From Macrostomum lignano (Eukaryota): a stretch of DNA of 32,375 nucleotides. Every line of letters begins with the position of its first letter. Position 1 is the first letter of the stretch. A model generated the notes under the pieces. It had not been told where the DNA came from, made no database searches, and saw nothing but the letters and a program-made list of their open reading frames with translations. The DNA is taken from positions 1 through 32,375 of the forward strand of contig NIVC01001732.1 of NCBI GenBank assembly GCA_002269645.1, in the 5' to 3' direction. Positions 28,101 to 32,375 of this stretch are shown here, piece after piece. Both the position numbers and the translations under genes were made by a program.

Positions 28101-31100
28101 ATCTTTCAGTTGGAACCTCAGATCTTTCAGTTTGAACCTCAGATCTTTCAATTTGAACCTCAGATCTTTCAGTTGGAACCTCAGATCTTTCAGTTTGAAC
28201 CTCAGATCTTTCAGTTGGAACATTCAGATCTTTCAGTTGGAACCTCAGATCTTTCAGTTTGAACCTCAGATCTTTCGGTTGGAACATCAAATCCTTCAGT
28301 TGGAGCATTCAGATCCTTTAGTTGAAATATAATTCTGATCCTTCAGTTGGAACATTTAGATCCTTCAGTTGGAACATTCAGATCCTTCAGTTGGAACCTC
28401 AGATCTTTCAGTTGGAACATCAATTCCTTCAGCCTTTTGCAGTCACCAAGCTCCTTAACCCACAACACAACCCTCACCGAATGTCCAAAACCAATTCCTG
28501 CAGAAAACTATCGGCGTGTTCAAGCCAAAAGACGAAGAACCATACGGCCGATTGAATCCCAAATGGACCAAATGGATGCACAAAATGTGCTGCCCCTGCT
28601 GCTTCGGGCGCTCCTGTCTGGTGCCGAATCAGGGCTACCTATCGAGGCCGGTGCCTCTATTGTTGATCACAAACTGGGGCTGGGCATTGTGCCGGAGACC
28701 CACGTGGTCACTTTGGTTAGCGAGACGTTCAACTATACGCCAATGGATCGGGTGAAGTCAAGGACTAAACAGAATTTGGCTAAAGTTACACAGCTTGGCC
28801 GACACTTCCATCATTTAGGATTGCCGCCTAAAGTGAGTTTACCATAACCTTAATCGGTTATTTGAGCTCTTTTGAGTCTCTTAACCCTAATGTCAGTGCA
28901 AAGACCGCTGTAACTGTTGGCTAAGACTCCCAGTCTTAGTGCTGAGAGTCCTAATCTCAATGCTAAGGCTCCACTAATCCCAATGCTAAGGCTCCACTAT
29001 CCCAATGCTAAGACTCCACTAATCCCAATACTAAGGCTCGACTAATCCCAATGCTAAGGCTCCACTAATCCCAATCCTAAGGCTCCCCTAATCCCAATGC
29101 TAGGCTCCACTAATCCCAATGCTAAGGCTTCACTAACCCCAATGCCAAGGCTATACTAACCCTAATGCTACCCTAAGGCTATGCTACCAATGCCCTAAGG
29201 CTATGCTACTAATGCTAATGGTCATCAACGATATGCCGATAAATGCCGATAACGATATATTAAATACTTTTAATTGGACTCTGATCAACTTGCTATGACT
29301 TCCAATATCACTGCTAAGAGTTGTGCTAACATCAAGGGTCCCACTTTCAAGAATAATTATCGAGATTTATAAGAATAATAATTGTTGCATCACTGCTGAC
29401 AAACAACTGACGTGTTTCTGTCAAACATTTGATAAAGCAGTTGGGGAAAAGTCAATAAAAGTGGAGTTATATTTTACAAACAATTTCTCAATGGCTCCCG
29501 TGCTTTGTTTAGAGCAGATTGTTCGGGGTTATCTATTATTTATTTAAAACTGTTCGCCTCAAAGTAATAAGAAAAACTAAAAAAGCTTGAAACACGGTGG
29601 CTCCTAGACAGGTGTTATATTTATTAGCTGATTTTTAGCCAATCATTACTTCTAGTTATTTTATATAAGAATTCTTTCTTCACTCTCTACCTTTGTCTAT
29701 TAGTCATAATTTTATTAGCAATGTTTTCTAGTCTCCTATGCTTAAATAAACAAGTTTTACATCTGCTCGAGTTTGTACTAGAAAATGCAACATAATTCTG
29801 TCTAAGAACCTTGGTCCTTTTTATGAAAAAAATTCAACTCCCGTCTGTATTCTTCGCTCGATTGACTATTTGTTCTTAGTTAGTAGCAAAAATATACCAT
29901 CGTGTCTGCAATAAAAAAACGTCCAATAAAGGTCATTTCAATAACAAAATGCAGACGCGTCTCACTGCTCCTGAGCGTCTAAGTCGTCCACGTAGACTCG
30001 TTTGATGGACTTGCTGCCTTGGCCGAGACCGCCGCACACGAAAAAGTGTGGAAATCTTTCGTCAAATTGACGACAACACTTTTCTAAGCTGTGCAGATCG
30101 GGCGCCTGTATTGTCACTCTGCGAGTTCGAGTCTCGTAGTACCGACTGGACGATTTCGGCTGCTCCAGCTGGATTTGAGTGCCGCACGATCTTGCTATGG
30201 CCTCGATGCGCCGATCGCTAGGGTCCGAGAATGCTCGCATATTGGCCGGGTCGTTTTTAACCCGGAAACTGTACTCGTACACTACCGACCGGTAGTTGAT
30301 TGACTCGGCCACTCGCAGCTCTTCAAGGTTGCCACGGACAGTGTCTTTGCGATGCTGCTGGCTGACTGAACCCGTTAGGAGTTGATCGACGTCCGTCTTG
30401 CTGCCATGATGCTGGTGACTTGTGCATGACTGCGGAGTTGTTTTCCTTAACTGACCAGCCGTTATTGGCTTGGATAGCAACTGTTTATTTGCTGGCGGCT
30501 GCTTCTTTGCTTGCTGCTGCTGATGGTGCTGCTGCTGCTTTGGCGGCGCCTCTGTTATATAAGCAACCGGGCCGTCTTCGAGTTCTTCGCTGAAATTGTC
30601 GTCAGAATTTCCATCGTAATAATCTTCATCGCGTTCCTCTTCGTAGTCTTCTGCAATTTGTGTTTGACATTCCAGCTGCTTTGGCTGTTGCTGCTCCTCT
30701 AATTTGTCACCGGCTTCTGTCACGAGCTTTTGCGTTGCTTCAATTGGTCCGGTTCTGTTGACACTGTCTCCGCTGTTGCAGTTCGGGCTGCAGCTGCTGC
30801 TGCTGCAGTTGTCACTGCCGCTACTGCTGCTGCTGCTGGTATTACTGCTGCTGCTTCCGCTGCTGCTACTGCCAGTTTCGTTGCTGATTCCAGTTTTGTT
30901 GCAGTCGCCAAAGCCAATCCCGCAACTCGATCCTGGCGCACCGCCGCTGACCTTGCCGTAACTCTCCTCCGTTGAAGCAGTCGAGTTAGTCAGAGGCCGG
31001 CCTATACCGTCCGACTCGTCAACCCGCGTCACTAGTTCACGTCGCTGCTTTTTAGTAGCTTTACTCTGCTGCTTCTGCAGTTTCTTGGCTTGTTTCTTGT

Positions 31101-32375
31101 TGTGGTCTCGTTCTCCGGAAGCTTCGCAGTCTGGCTGCACTTCAATGCGCTCTATCGAGCGTCTTCGAAATAGTTTCTTTAACGCCGAGAGCATATTGCT
31201 AAGCAATTGTGTCTTCTCTAGGAAATAATCGTACTTAATATTATAAAATCAGGATTCTACAGCTTTGAATTTTTTCACTTCTAATTGATTAACGAGTGCA
31301 AATTAAACTGTCTATAATAATACGACGTCCTTTTAATCTTGGCGCTGTGCGGCTTGTCTCTACATAGTTGGCCAGCTGATTTCGGCCATAGACTAAACTA
31401 TCTCAATCCCCTTGAAGTTGGTCTTGTAAAATTCACTGACCTCCATTGGTTTCGCTACTGGCTACTCACAAGTAGTATTATGCCACTTTTAACCTGTTTT
31501 TAGACTGGCTCATTTCAAACATTCGTGGAAGGCTACAAAGATGCCGACTATTGGCTTCGCCGTTTCGACATCGAGCCGCTGTCCCAGACGGTTGCCGACG
31601 AATTTCAATTCCTATTTGAGAAGCTAGTAGTGTTGGACTATGTTATACGCAATACCGATCGGGGCAACGATAATTGGCTTATACGATACGATAAACCGGA
31701 AGTGACACCAATGGCTTCCGATTCGAGTTCGGCGCCCGCTTCCACGTCGGCCAGCGCTTCGAGCTCCGGCGTCAGAGCGACGCCCGGTGCGACAGCTAAT
31801 AATGCCAGTGGCGACGATCAACTCGACAGGATTGCGCCGGCTGATGGGGACCCGGACGGCAAGCAGGCAGGATGAGCAGGACGATGAAGATGGCAGCAGC
31901 GATCACACGGAGTCCGGGATCGAGGAGGTAAAATGCCCGTGATTGGTGATACATATCGGTAGTGAGAGCTTTCAATCTTTATTCAGGAATGGCTGTTAAT
32001 GTTATTGTTAGAGTCTGGCTGTGCCTGACTTTCTGGCTCTGCTTGGTTTGTATTTGCTATAGTGTGACTGCCGGTTTTACTGTTCGTCTGTCTGTCTGTC
32101 CGTCTGTCTGTCTGTCTGTCTGTCTGTCTGTCTGTCTGTCTGTCTGTCTCTGTCTGTCTGTCTGTCTGTCTGTGTCTGTCTGTGTCTGTCTGTCTGTCTG
32201 TCTGTCTGTCTGTCTGTCTCTGTCTGTCTCTGCTGTCTGTCTGTCTGTCTGTCTGTCTGTCTGTCTGTCTGTCTGTCTGTCTGTCTCCAGCTCAGCAGCG
32301 GAGCAACTCCGCCCCCGCAGGACTGGGGATGGTGCAGCAGCCTAGGATCTACGTGGCCGCCATTGACAACGGCCT
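25124..32375 (+). CDS. PI4K2: Phosphatidylinositol 4-kinase type II (PI4K2A/B family), 3'-partial; about 3 apparent single-base frameshifts
   Basis: Exons 25124-25507, 26399-26596 (TACTAAC branch point at 26383), 28504-28832, 31504-31927, 32291->32375. Diagnostic motifs: [40 protein letters not shown] palmitoylation motif, NQGYLSEAGAS, GLPPK|[49 protein letters not shown]. Frame breaks lie at ~28643, ~31867 and ~32328. Confidence 0.96.
25557..26305 (+). repeat. 40-bp dimeric minisatellite (AATCGGGCACTCTCAAAAGTC + AATTGGACACTCAAAAATG), PI4K2 intron 1
   Basis: Two related 21- and 19-bp monomers alternate. Confidence 0.93.
26655..28420 (+). repeat. 21/22-bp minisatellite (CAGATCTTTCAGTTTGAACCT), about 80 copies, PI4K2 intron 2
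   Basis: Directly visible. A local 192-bp higher-order duplication gives identical ORF-track peptides at 27637 and 27829. Confidence 0.96.
28960..29215 (+). repeat. ~23-bp minisatellite (AATCCCAATGCTAAGGCTCCACT), PI4K2 intron 3
   Basis: About 9 degenerate tandem copies. Confidence 0.88.
29962..31194 (-). CDS. Uncharacterised 410-aa protein with uninterrupted CDS, nested antisense in PI4K2 intron 3; possible degenerate KH-like C-terminal domain
   Basis: A continuous 1233-nt ORF (ATG at 31194, stop ending 29962) forms a GC-rich island in an AT-rich intron. Poly-S and poly-Q tracts resemble those in the neighbouring true exons. The sequence is not tandem-repeat derived. An acceptor-like ATTTCCTAG lies ~24 nt upstream of the ATG and a minus-strand AATAAA lies at 29711-29716. 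Confidence 0.72.
   Translation of the reverse strand: MLSALKKLFRRRSIERIEVQPDCEASGERDHNKKQAKKLQKQQSKATKKQRRELVTRVDESDGIGRPLTNSTASTEESYGKVSGGAPGSSCGIGFGDCNKTGISNETGSSSSGSSSSNTSSSSSSGSDNCSSSSCSPNCNSGDSVNRTGPIEATQKLVTEAGDKLEEQQQPKQLECQTQIAEDYEEERDEDYYDGNSDDNFSEELEDGPVAYITEAPPKQQQHHQQQQAKKQPPANKQLLSKPITAGQLRKTTPQSCTSHQHHGSKTDVDQLLTGSVSQQHRKDTVRGNLEELRVAESINYRSVVYEYSFRVKNDPANMRAFSDPSDRRIEAIARSCGTQIQLEQPKSSSRYYETRTRRVTIQAPDLHSLEKCCRQFDERFPHFFVCGGLGQGSKSIKRVYVDDLDAQEQ
32085..32287 (+). repeat. (TCTG)n microsatellite forming the pyrimidine tract of a PI4K2 acceptor
   Basis: It runs up to CTCCAG| at 32290. Confidence 0.95.

Follow-up and report, generated by a model that had tools for sequence, protein, structure and literature searches.

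The K homology (KH) domain is among the commonest of RNA-binding folds, and its GXXG loop, which touches the sugar-phosphate backbone, is treated as the hallmark of the fold. In type I KH domains three helices pack on an antiparallel sheet of three strands, and about 4 nucleotides of single-stranded RNA or DNA are held in a cleft bounded by alpha1, GXXG, alpha2 and beta2. Small eutherian-specific proteins of mammals (KHDC1, DPPA5 and OOEP) each have one atypical KH domain as their core, and genes nested antisense within an intron of another gene are a general phenomenon in animals. When two aspartates are placed in the GXXG loop, RNA binding is abolished in six KH domains and the domains do not unfold (PMC3413153). 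The first KH domain of KHNYN (KH1) lacks GXXG, and the extended di-KH domain of this protein shows no RNA binding and appears to interact with protein (PMC11997328). N4BP1 possesses two KH domains with degenerate GXXG-like motifs, which are used to bind EDC4, and lacks a positively charged surface (PMC13586276). It has been argued that GXXG-less modules of the KHNYN/N4BP1 type have shifted from RNA to protein binding (PMC11997328, PMC13586276). Here we describe a gene nested on the minus strand within coding intron 3 of the lipid-kinase gene PI4K2 in the free-living flatworm Macrostomum lignano, the product of which ends in a predicted KH domain without GXXG. The sequence analysed, referred to below as the window, is the whole contig NIVC01001732.1 (32,375 bp) of assembly GCA_002269645.1 (Mlig_3_7).

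As judged from sequence, the family to which this domain belongs is flatworm-wide, so far undescribed and not in Pfam. It appears, on the predicted structure, to have held the KH fold through all of flatworm evolution, swapping GXXG for an equally invariant Asp-Arg-Arg; the replacement of a hallmark by an invariant motif suggests that the KH cleft has been put to another, conserved use. The explanation that we favour, with moderate confidence, is that of an expressed antisense gene in PI4K2 intron 3, the product of which is a tethered adaptor with a degenerate KH domain as its binding module. Some members come from important parasites of humans and livestock (Clonorchis, Fasciola, Paragonimus, Taenia and relatives of the schistosomes), and M. 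lignano offers RNA interference and transgenesis, which makes function directly testable.

The nested gene and its flatworm relatives

An earlier note on this DNA, made from the letters alone, had described an uninterrupted open reading frame (ORF) of 410 codons at 29962-31194, antisense within PI4K2 intron 3. Both statements agree with what we find: the ORF listing and translation confirm the frame on the minus strand, 410 codons plus stop from the first ATG at 31194, and exon mapping together with the assembly annotation (three copies) confirms the nesting. The listing itself gives 29962..31206 (-), 414 amino acids, counting from a TTG start, and the closest in-frame stop 5′ of the ATG is 19 codons away. 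From stop to stop the frame spans 428 codons, and there is no longer ORF in the window. In 2000 shuffles the host intron yielded no ORF above 266 codons, and sequence composed like the ORF itself none above 302 codons; because 428 codons exceed every shuffled maximum, the nested ORF is not a chance frame. The features of the gene are as follows.

29962..31194, minus strand: complete single-exon coding sequence, 410 amino acids plus stop, cluster Mlig033664 of M. lignano (ORF listing, assembly annotation, shuffles)
31156..31194, minus strand: basic amphipathic N-terminal segment of putative function, codons 1-13 (helical hydrophobic moment, charge)
30286..31155, minus strand: low-complexity region, codons 14-303, comprising K/Q-rich, poly-S, acidic and poly-Q stretches (translation)
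30037..30285, minus strand: predicted degenerate type I KH domain, codons 304-386 (AlphaFold2, Foldseek, family alignment, omega)
30208..30225, minus strand: alpha1-alpha2 loop D-P-S-D-R-R in place of GXXG, codons 324-329 (alignment A1, hhalign)
29711..29716, minus strand: first AATAAA 3′ of the stop, 246 nucleotides (nt) away, a candidate polyadenylation signal (pattern scan)

The same scan locates more copies of AATAAA 337 and 418 nt 3′ of the stop. The composition that had been described, with a basic amphipathic N-terminus followed by K/Q-rich, poly-S, acidic and poly-Q segments, is visible in the translation, where residues 1-11 possess the highest helical hydrophobic moment (muH 0.77) among all 11-mers of the protein and a net charge of +4. 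Codons 14-303 are probably disordered, and the first 20 residues of a C-terminal fragment of 130 residues were modelled with a predicted local distance difference test score (pLDDT) below 50. The last ~110 residues of the 410-residue protein are free of repeats.

The nested ORF is an annotated gene, cluster Mlig033664, in GCA_002269645.1, and each of its three copies in the assembly is nested in PI4K2 in the same way. M. lignano became polyploid recently, and its published assembly is highly redundant (PMC5730564). The protein encoded on the second contig is identical, and the third contig encodes a variant differing in one residue (PAA62010.1; BOX15_Mlig033664g3). Comparison of the window with NIVC01000834.1 revealed 0 mismatches and just 11 indels over 12.4 kb, which identifies a redundant copy, while NIVC01001981.1 is a diverged (homeologous) copy. 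Over its 1233 nt the ORF differs from the latter by three substitutions, one of them non-synonymous (S78G), and by no indel; in 1442 nt of flanking intron there are 16 substitutions plus indels. The Mlig_3_7 annotation was built from transcript evidence only, using StringTie and TACO without unstranded assemblies, together with trans-splicing reads, poly(A) reads and a de novo transcriptome (PMC5730564). A gene model on the minus strand therefore implies a transcript, which bears on the earlier note's provision that minus-strand transcripts should exist. From these data the nested ORF is a genuine protein-coding gene, its expression resting on the transcript-based annotation.

Selection was assessed against a homologue from a related species, P0002 (292 residues), which is encoded on the 1048-nt contig L003 (Logan SRR31628394) and is 69% identical to the window protein over the C-terminal 126 residues. 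Across 125 aligned C-terminal codons the non-synonymous rate (dN) is 0.23-0.25 and the synonymous rate (dS) 1.2-2.3, giving an omega of ~0.1-0.2 that is approximate, as dS is saturated. By this comparison the KH-like domain is under purifying selection, as the earlier note would have it. The N-terminal part diverges fast (dN 0.59, dS saturated), and only a few short N-terminal motifs, one of 19 residues and one of 13 residues, are common to the two proteins. At the DNA level blastn aligns only the C-terminal ~430 nt with L003, and a continuation of the homology upstream in another frame was considered and rejected on this ground. Positions 1-89 of L003, 5′ of the relative's ATG, read ...ttctaatacccag|GTCACAAG, which has the look of an acceptor site for 3′ splicing or trans-splicing; nt 12-14 form an in-frame stop. 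P0002 may lack both the basic N-terminus and the poly-S region, being then a shorter protein of 292 residues, or its gene may include a further exon upstream.

All homologues come from an exhaustive phmmer search with the last 130 residues against 1.84 billion representatives. It returned 28 proteins including the query, hence 27 relatives, down to E=1e-3, one of which is a doubtful repeat match. The protein is thus no orphan, as had been supposed, since its relatives extend across at least four flatworm classes. All those named are flatworm proteins, labelled hypothetical or unnamed at NCBI. The family includes M. lignano paralogues of 316-328 residues at five loci; trematode proteins from Clonorchis, Paragonimus, Fasciola hepatica, F. 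gigantica, Calicophoron, Echinostoma, Dicrocoelium, Trichobilharzia and Heterobilharzia; cestode proteins from Taenia solium, T. asiatica, Mesocestoides and Spirometra/Sparganum; and a monogenean protein from Protopolystoma. A Pfam scan of 14 homologues matched no family, and neither the window protein nor its homologues gave a transposon match in Pfam, a result on which the reading of the ORF as a host gene had been made to depend. A word-indexed protein search with the 130-residue C-terminus or the family alignment as query found no match, though members sit in that collection; this blank is not evidence that the family is absent, because the collection's own representatives went undetected.

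What the family has in common is the C-terminal domain, the remainder of each protein being long, divergent and of low complexity. An alignment of 24 domain sequences (A1) possesses nine invariant columns, which in the numbering of the window protein are F310, F322, D327, R328, R329, L343, C373, D378 and P382. Its consensus is Y.Y.FW...F.NP.DRRIESI.R.S.C.I.LT...V.I.AP...ALEKCC..FDDKFP.FYA. The loop consensus is NPxDRR, the Asp-Arg-Arg (D327, R328 and R329; A1 columns D33, R34 and R35) being invariant in 24/24 sequences, and a conserved FPxF follows alpha3.

Several family members need separate mention. The automatic UniRef names on P0003, P0009, P0026, P0028 and P0035 (RGS, La-type HTH, Ser/Thr kinase, P-loop NTPase, AAA) have no Pfam support; fused gene models or weak profile matches probably account for them. 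P0004 (791 residues, on a 36 kb ENA contig) owes its phmmer E-value of 3e-11 to eight tandem repeats of ~59 residues with SPSRDRRGGSVARSRGLQLQL, and the repeat resembles the alpha1-loop-alpha2-beta2 segment of the family domain; the match could be a chance one boosted by repetition, or the repeat could derive from a domain fragment. P0022 and P0023 (~206 residues; on L007, a contig of GCA_052426985.1, and L008, Logan SRR29708349) are short homologues from extremely fragmented assembly. In these the domain stands at the very N-terminus and is followed by ~100 residues resembling a second related unit (YYKLEFHIE...RRYAIVSG), so that they may represent a two-domain branch of the family.

Predicted fold of the C-terminal domain

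The C-terminal region was modelled with AlphaFold2. As a single sequence the last 130 residues reached a pLDDT of 57.5 and already displayed the order beta-alpha-alpha-beta-beta-alpha; with A1 the same topology was obtained at a pLDDT of 80.2 and a predicted template modelling score of 0.71. The elements of the model are beta1 at 306-313 (YEYSFRVK), alpha1 at 316-323 (PANMRAFS), the loop at 324-328 (DPSD), alpha2 at 329-337 (RRIEAIARS), beta2 at 340-343 (QIQL), a variable loop, beta3 at 357-364 (RRVTIQAP) and alpha3 at 367-380. In the numbering of the model fragment these correspond to E12-19, H22-29, H35-43, E46-49, E63-70 and H73-86.

When the model was compared with the PDB using Foldseek, ranks 1-13 were all type I KH domains, with a probability of 1.00 and target-normalised template modelling (TM) scores of 0.57-0.75. 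The best match was KH4 of FUBP1 (6y24; E=1.5e-4, TM 0.71), and KH3 of PCBP (1wvn) gave a TM of 0.75 at a root-mean-square deviation (rmsd) of 2.5 Å; KH3 of hnRNP K and of Nova, then BICC1, IMP and FMRP, were also matched. Independently for the window protein and for the homologue P0018, KH_1 (PF00013) was the top Pfam match, below threshold in each case. For profile comparison six canonical KH domains were used, each of which was confirmed as KH_1 at 60-81 bits. Using hhalign, A1 aligned with these in register over 55 columns (P=0.0057, at a probability of only 6.5%), pairing DPSD with GKGG, RRIEAI with QRIKQI, IQL with IKI, and RRVTIQA with RIITITG. Sequence searches of the PDB with the protein or the family profile as query returned only noise and no KH domain.

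No GXXG loop is present: the window protein has DPSD at this position, and there is no conserved glycine among the 24 members. The proposal that the C-terminal ~85 residues form a divergent KH fold with DPSD replacing GXXG looks largely right on the evidence of the model. The predicted structure, the Foldseek ranking and the hhalign register speak for a degenerate type I KH fold, but the domain fails the GXXG sequence hallmark and misses the curated Pfam threshold. The tools that the earlier note had named for the question were similarly divided, AlphaFold2 and Foldseek giving a KH-like model (pLDDT 80.2) with KH domains at the top and HMMER a KH_1 match below threshold.

Compared with canonical type I KH domains (KH3 of hnRNP K, PCBP and Nova, KH4 of FUBP1), the flatworm domain possesses the same predicted beta-alpha-alpha-beta-beta-alpha order with a variable loop between beta2 and beta3. 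The best KH-normalised TM scores are 0.65-0.75, with an rmsd of 2.4-3.0 Å over ~75 columns, and the core hydrophobic positions are in register by hhalign. Unlike them it lacks GXXG, has a loop of consensus NPxD (DPSD in the window protein) with two invariant Arg behind it, and scores below the Pfam gathering threshold. The conserved CC in alpha3 and the FPxFYA tail of the flatworm domain are in turn absent from KH_1. In contrast to canonical KH arrays, the flatworm domain stands alone, at the C-terminal extremity of a disordered protein.

KH1 of KHNYN and the KH domains of N4BP1 are alike in keeping the type I KH fold after loss of GXXG (PMC11997328, PMC13586276). They show no detectable sequence relationship to the flatworm domain. 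In KHNYN KH1 a proline-kinked continuous helix replaces the loop, whereas the flatworm domain keeps a loop of equal length; N4BP1 is without a basic surface, whereas the flatworm family is basic. Both proteins contain a tandem extended di-KH as opposed to one flatworm domain. We did not find their tandem orthogonal di-KH and its C-terminal helical bundle: in the window protein and in most relatives the phmmer match was confined to a single stretch, and the model comprises one KH unit and a short tail. The KHDC1/DPPA5/OOEP proteins resemble the flatworm family as a lineage-restricted group with a single atypical KH domain, and differ in architecture and taxon; no flatworm member scanned matched a family of this type in Pfam.

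Possible ligand, proposed tether and gene origin

In the explanation that we favour the product consists of three parts, namely a basic amphipathic N-terminus, ~290 fast-evolving low-complexity residues, and the conserved C-terminal domain of ~85 residues, which, being KH-derived, would act as the binding module of a tethered adaptor. The family loop keeps the length of GXXG and has an invariant Asp at its end, followed by two invariant Arg which open alpha2. Because GXXG is lost and an invariant Asp ends the loop, canonical clamping of the backbone is unlikely, and single-stranded RNA would not be held in the GXXG manner. The domain core (~80 residues) carries a mean net charge of +5.3 in the family, and the variable loop between beta2 and beta3, next to the ancestral binding cleft, a mean charge of +2.6 that rises to +7 in trematodes. 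An anionic ligand is argued for, because the domain and its variable loop are basic family-wide; the invariant Asp-Arg-Arg site plus the basic loop would hold such a partner. At a rough estimate we would assign somewhat under half of the likelihood to non-canonical RNA or a ribonucleoprotein (RNP), about a third to a protein, and the rest to acidic lipid or another ligand.

The N-terminus may provide localisation, through a basic amphipathic helix in the Macrostomum protein and of myristoyl type in its trematode and cestode relatives. Starts of the N-myristoylation type (MGQRxS, MGQxxS or MGLQCS) open at least 12 homologues from trematodes or cestodes, some with a nearby Cys. These starts in the parasites and the basic amphipathic N-terminus of the Macrostomum protein hint at membrane-proximal action. 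A common N-terminal motif, relating the 13-residue segment of the window protein to RREIVEIVYDD of trematodes, was considered and rejected, as phmmer without filters found no similarity.

Several results weigh against the tethered adaptor. The fold depends on one predicted model from a shallow alignment of 24 sequences, and the Foldseek E-values are modest (1e-4 to 1e-2). Against a cut-off of 21.5, KH_1 scores 13.4 bits with the full protein as query and 15.7 bits with the domain alone, and KH_1 was matched in just 2/24 family members; to these may be added the low hhalign probability and the saturated dS, both given above. The basic surface is equally compatible with RNA, acidic lipid or acidic protein. 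Neither the window protein (MLSALK) nor other Macrostomum members possess a myristoylation-type start, with Gly2 and a small or hydroxyl residue 6, and phmmer with its filters off detected no N-terminal similarity between the window protein and its homologues. The identifiers of Mlig033664 and its paralogue were not found in the searched paper texts or supplements of two M. lignano resource papers.

Among the alternatives the best supported, which we regard as the less likely account though a serious one, holds that the domain is purely a protein-protein module without nucleic-acid binding, and that a disordered scaffold recruits a partner through its Asp-Arg-Arg surface. GXXG is wholly lost and there is an invariant Asp in the loop, and Asp in the loop is what kills RNA binding in the six KH domains mentioned above (PMC3413153). 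The precedents fit as well, KHNYN KH1 having no GXXG and its extended di-KH no RNA binding (PMC11997328), and N4BP1 binding EDC4 (PMC13586276). The family is, however, basic in both core (+5.3) and variable loop (up to +7), unlike N4BP1, and its two invariant Arg are situated at the start of alpha2, beside the ancestral RNA cleft.

The tethered adaptor can also be taken further, to a version that we consider speculative and rather improbable. In this the Asp-Arg-Arg KH domain would constitute a new functional class, a module specific to flatworms by which an anionic ligand (RNA or RNP, or phosphoinositide-rich membrane) is tethered to membranes, the anchor being N-myristoyl (plus Cys) in the parasites and an amphipathic helix in Macrostomum. 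Residence within the gene for palmitoylated PI4K2 would then be no accident and would reflect co-regulation with membranes producing phosphatidylinositol 4-phosphate. If true, the family would be a flatworm-restricted membrane-RNP or lipid adaptor, perhaps an essential one, and would on that account interest parasite biologists.

The nested gene had further been taken for a possible lineage-specific retrogene capable of transcriptional interference with the host kinase. We consider it improbable that a processed retrogene lies in the PI4K2 intron with antisense interference as its main effect. The coding sequence is intronless, while an M. lignano paralogue, which is not nested, contains a single intron of ~190 nt in its N-terminal half, and the schistosome homologue, from Heterobilharzia, has three exons over 13.5 kb outside PI4K2, with the whole domain on the last. 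Nesting is found only in the Mlig033664 copies and is shared by neither of these two genes. Paralogues, which the earlier note had proposed to look for, do exist, and the one examined bears an intron and is not nested. Against retroposition, no A-run of at least 6 is present within 1130 nt 3′ of the stop and no direct repeats bracket the ORF, though an old insertion could lose both marks. The paralogue's intron falls within the N-terminal half, which cannot be aligned, and in all genes examined one exon carries the domain. Retroposition is not needed, because the family is simply intron-poor, and the retrogene claim is therefore not upheld. As to interference, the protein is under purifying selection, so the coding product matters and not transcription alone.

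The arrangement itself is ordinary. As in other nested antisense genes of animals, an intron-poor guest is located wholly in one intron of an intron-rich host on the opposite strand; nothing about it is unusual, and nesting is confined to the three M. lignano copies and is no family trait.

Least likely of all, to the point of being very improbable, is that the ORF is non-functional or mis-annotated, kept open by CAG/AGC-rich low complexity, and that the KH likeness is a modelling artefact: much of the ORF is trinucleotide-repeat-like (repeat families D2 and D3), minisatellites account for several other long ORFs in the window and Pfam support is sub-threshold, but what is conserved is the non-repetitive C-terminus, for which distant flatworms supply 27 homologues to E=1e-3 and which has nine invariant columns, an omega of 0.1-0.2 and a confident KH-like model, the ORF length was unreached in any shuffle, and conservation across classes effectively refutes the idea.

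The PI4K2 host and the rest of the contig

On the plus strand the order of genes is a CTR9-like TPR gene (~0.2-5.8 kb), a TACC C-terminal domain (14.6-15.9 kb) and PI4K2. The coding exons of PI4K2 were placed using frame translations plus splice-site sequences.

25124-25507, plus strand: PI4K2 exon 1 (frame translation, splice sites)
About 26399-26596, plus strand: PI4K2 exon 2 (frame translation, splice sites)
28504-28832, plus strand: PI4K2 exon 3, with the CCPCC motif (MCCPCCFG) and a 1-nt deletion near 28643 in the window contig (frame translation)
28833..31503, plus strand: PI4K2 coding intron 3, the host intron, from GTGAGT donor to TTTTTAG acceptor (exon mapping, splice sites)
31504..31875, plus strand: PI4K2 exon 4 and beyond, mapped from its 5′ end (match to PF00454, PI3_PI4_kinase, E=1.5e-6; frame translation)

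Besides the whole of the nested gene, intron 3 contains a 23-nt minisatellite, at 28951-29170. The nested ORF is 1130 nt from exon 3 and 309 nt from exon 4, so that its whole coding sequence lies in one intron of a host on the opposite strand. The assembly annotation likewise places the 410-residue gene within a PF00454 gene of 593 residues on the opposite strand.

At 28640-28646 in exon 3 the window reads CTATCGAGG, and the other two assembly copies read CTATCCGAGG. This 1-nt homopolymer deletion disrupts the PI4K2 reading frame (NQGYLS|EAGAS) and has the appearance of an error of long-read assembly, in a contig that is redundant, as opposed to a true frameshift.

Minisatellites with units of 20-56 nt crowd the introns. 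They occupy PI4K2 introns 1 and 2 at 25552-26302 and 26660-28422, and others, besides that of intron 3, are located at 1877-2371, 10158-10811, 11293-11801, 12844-13310, 14213-14618 and 24437-24721. The largest is a 21-mer present in 83 copies over 1.76 kb. Because minisatellites create long spurious ORFs on either strand, for instance 26942-28093 (383 amino acids), ORF length alone is a poor guide in the M. lignano genome. In the region of the CTR9-like gene a GC-rich array at 2862-3524 consists of ~32 copies of a 21-nt repeat (AGAGACAGGGGCGCTCACCCG); it is open in several frames, with peptide repeats of the RDRGAHP type, and may be either intronic or a coding repeat inserted in CTR9.

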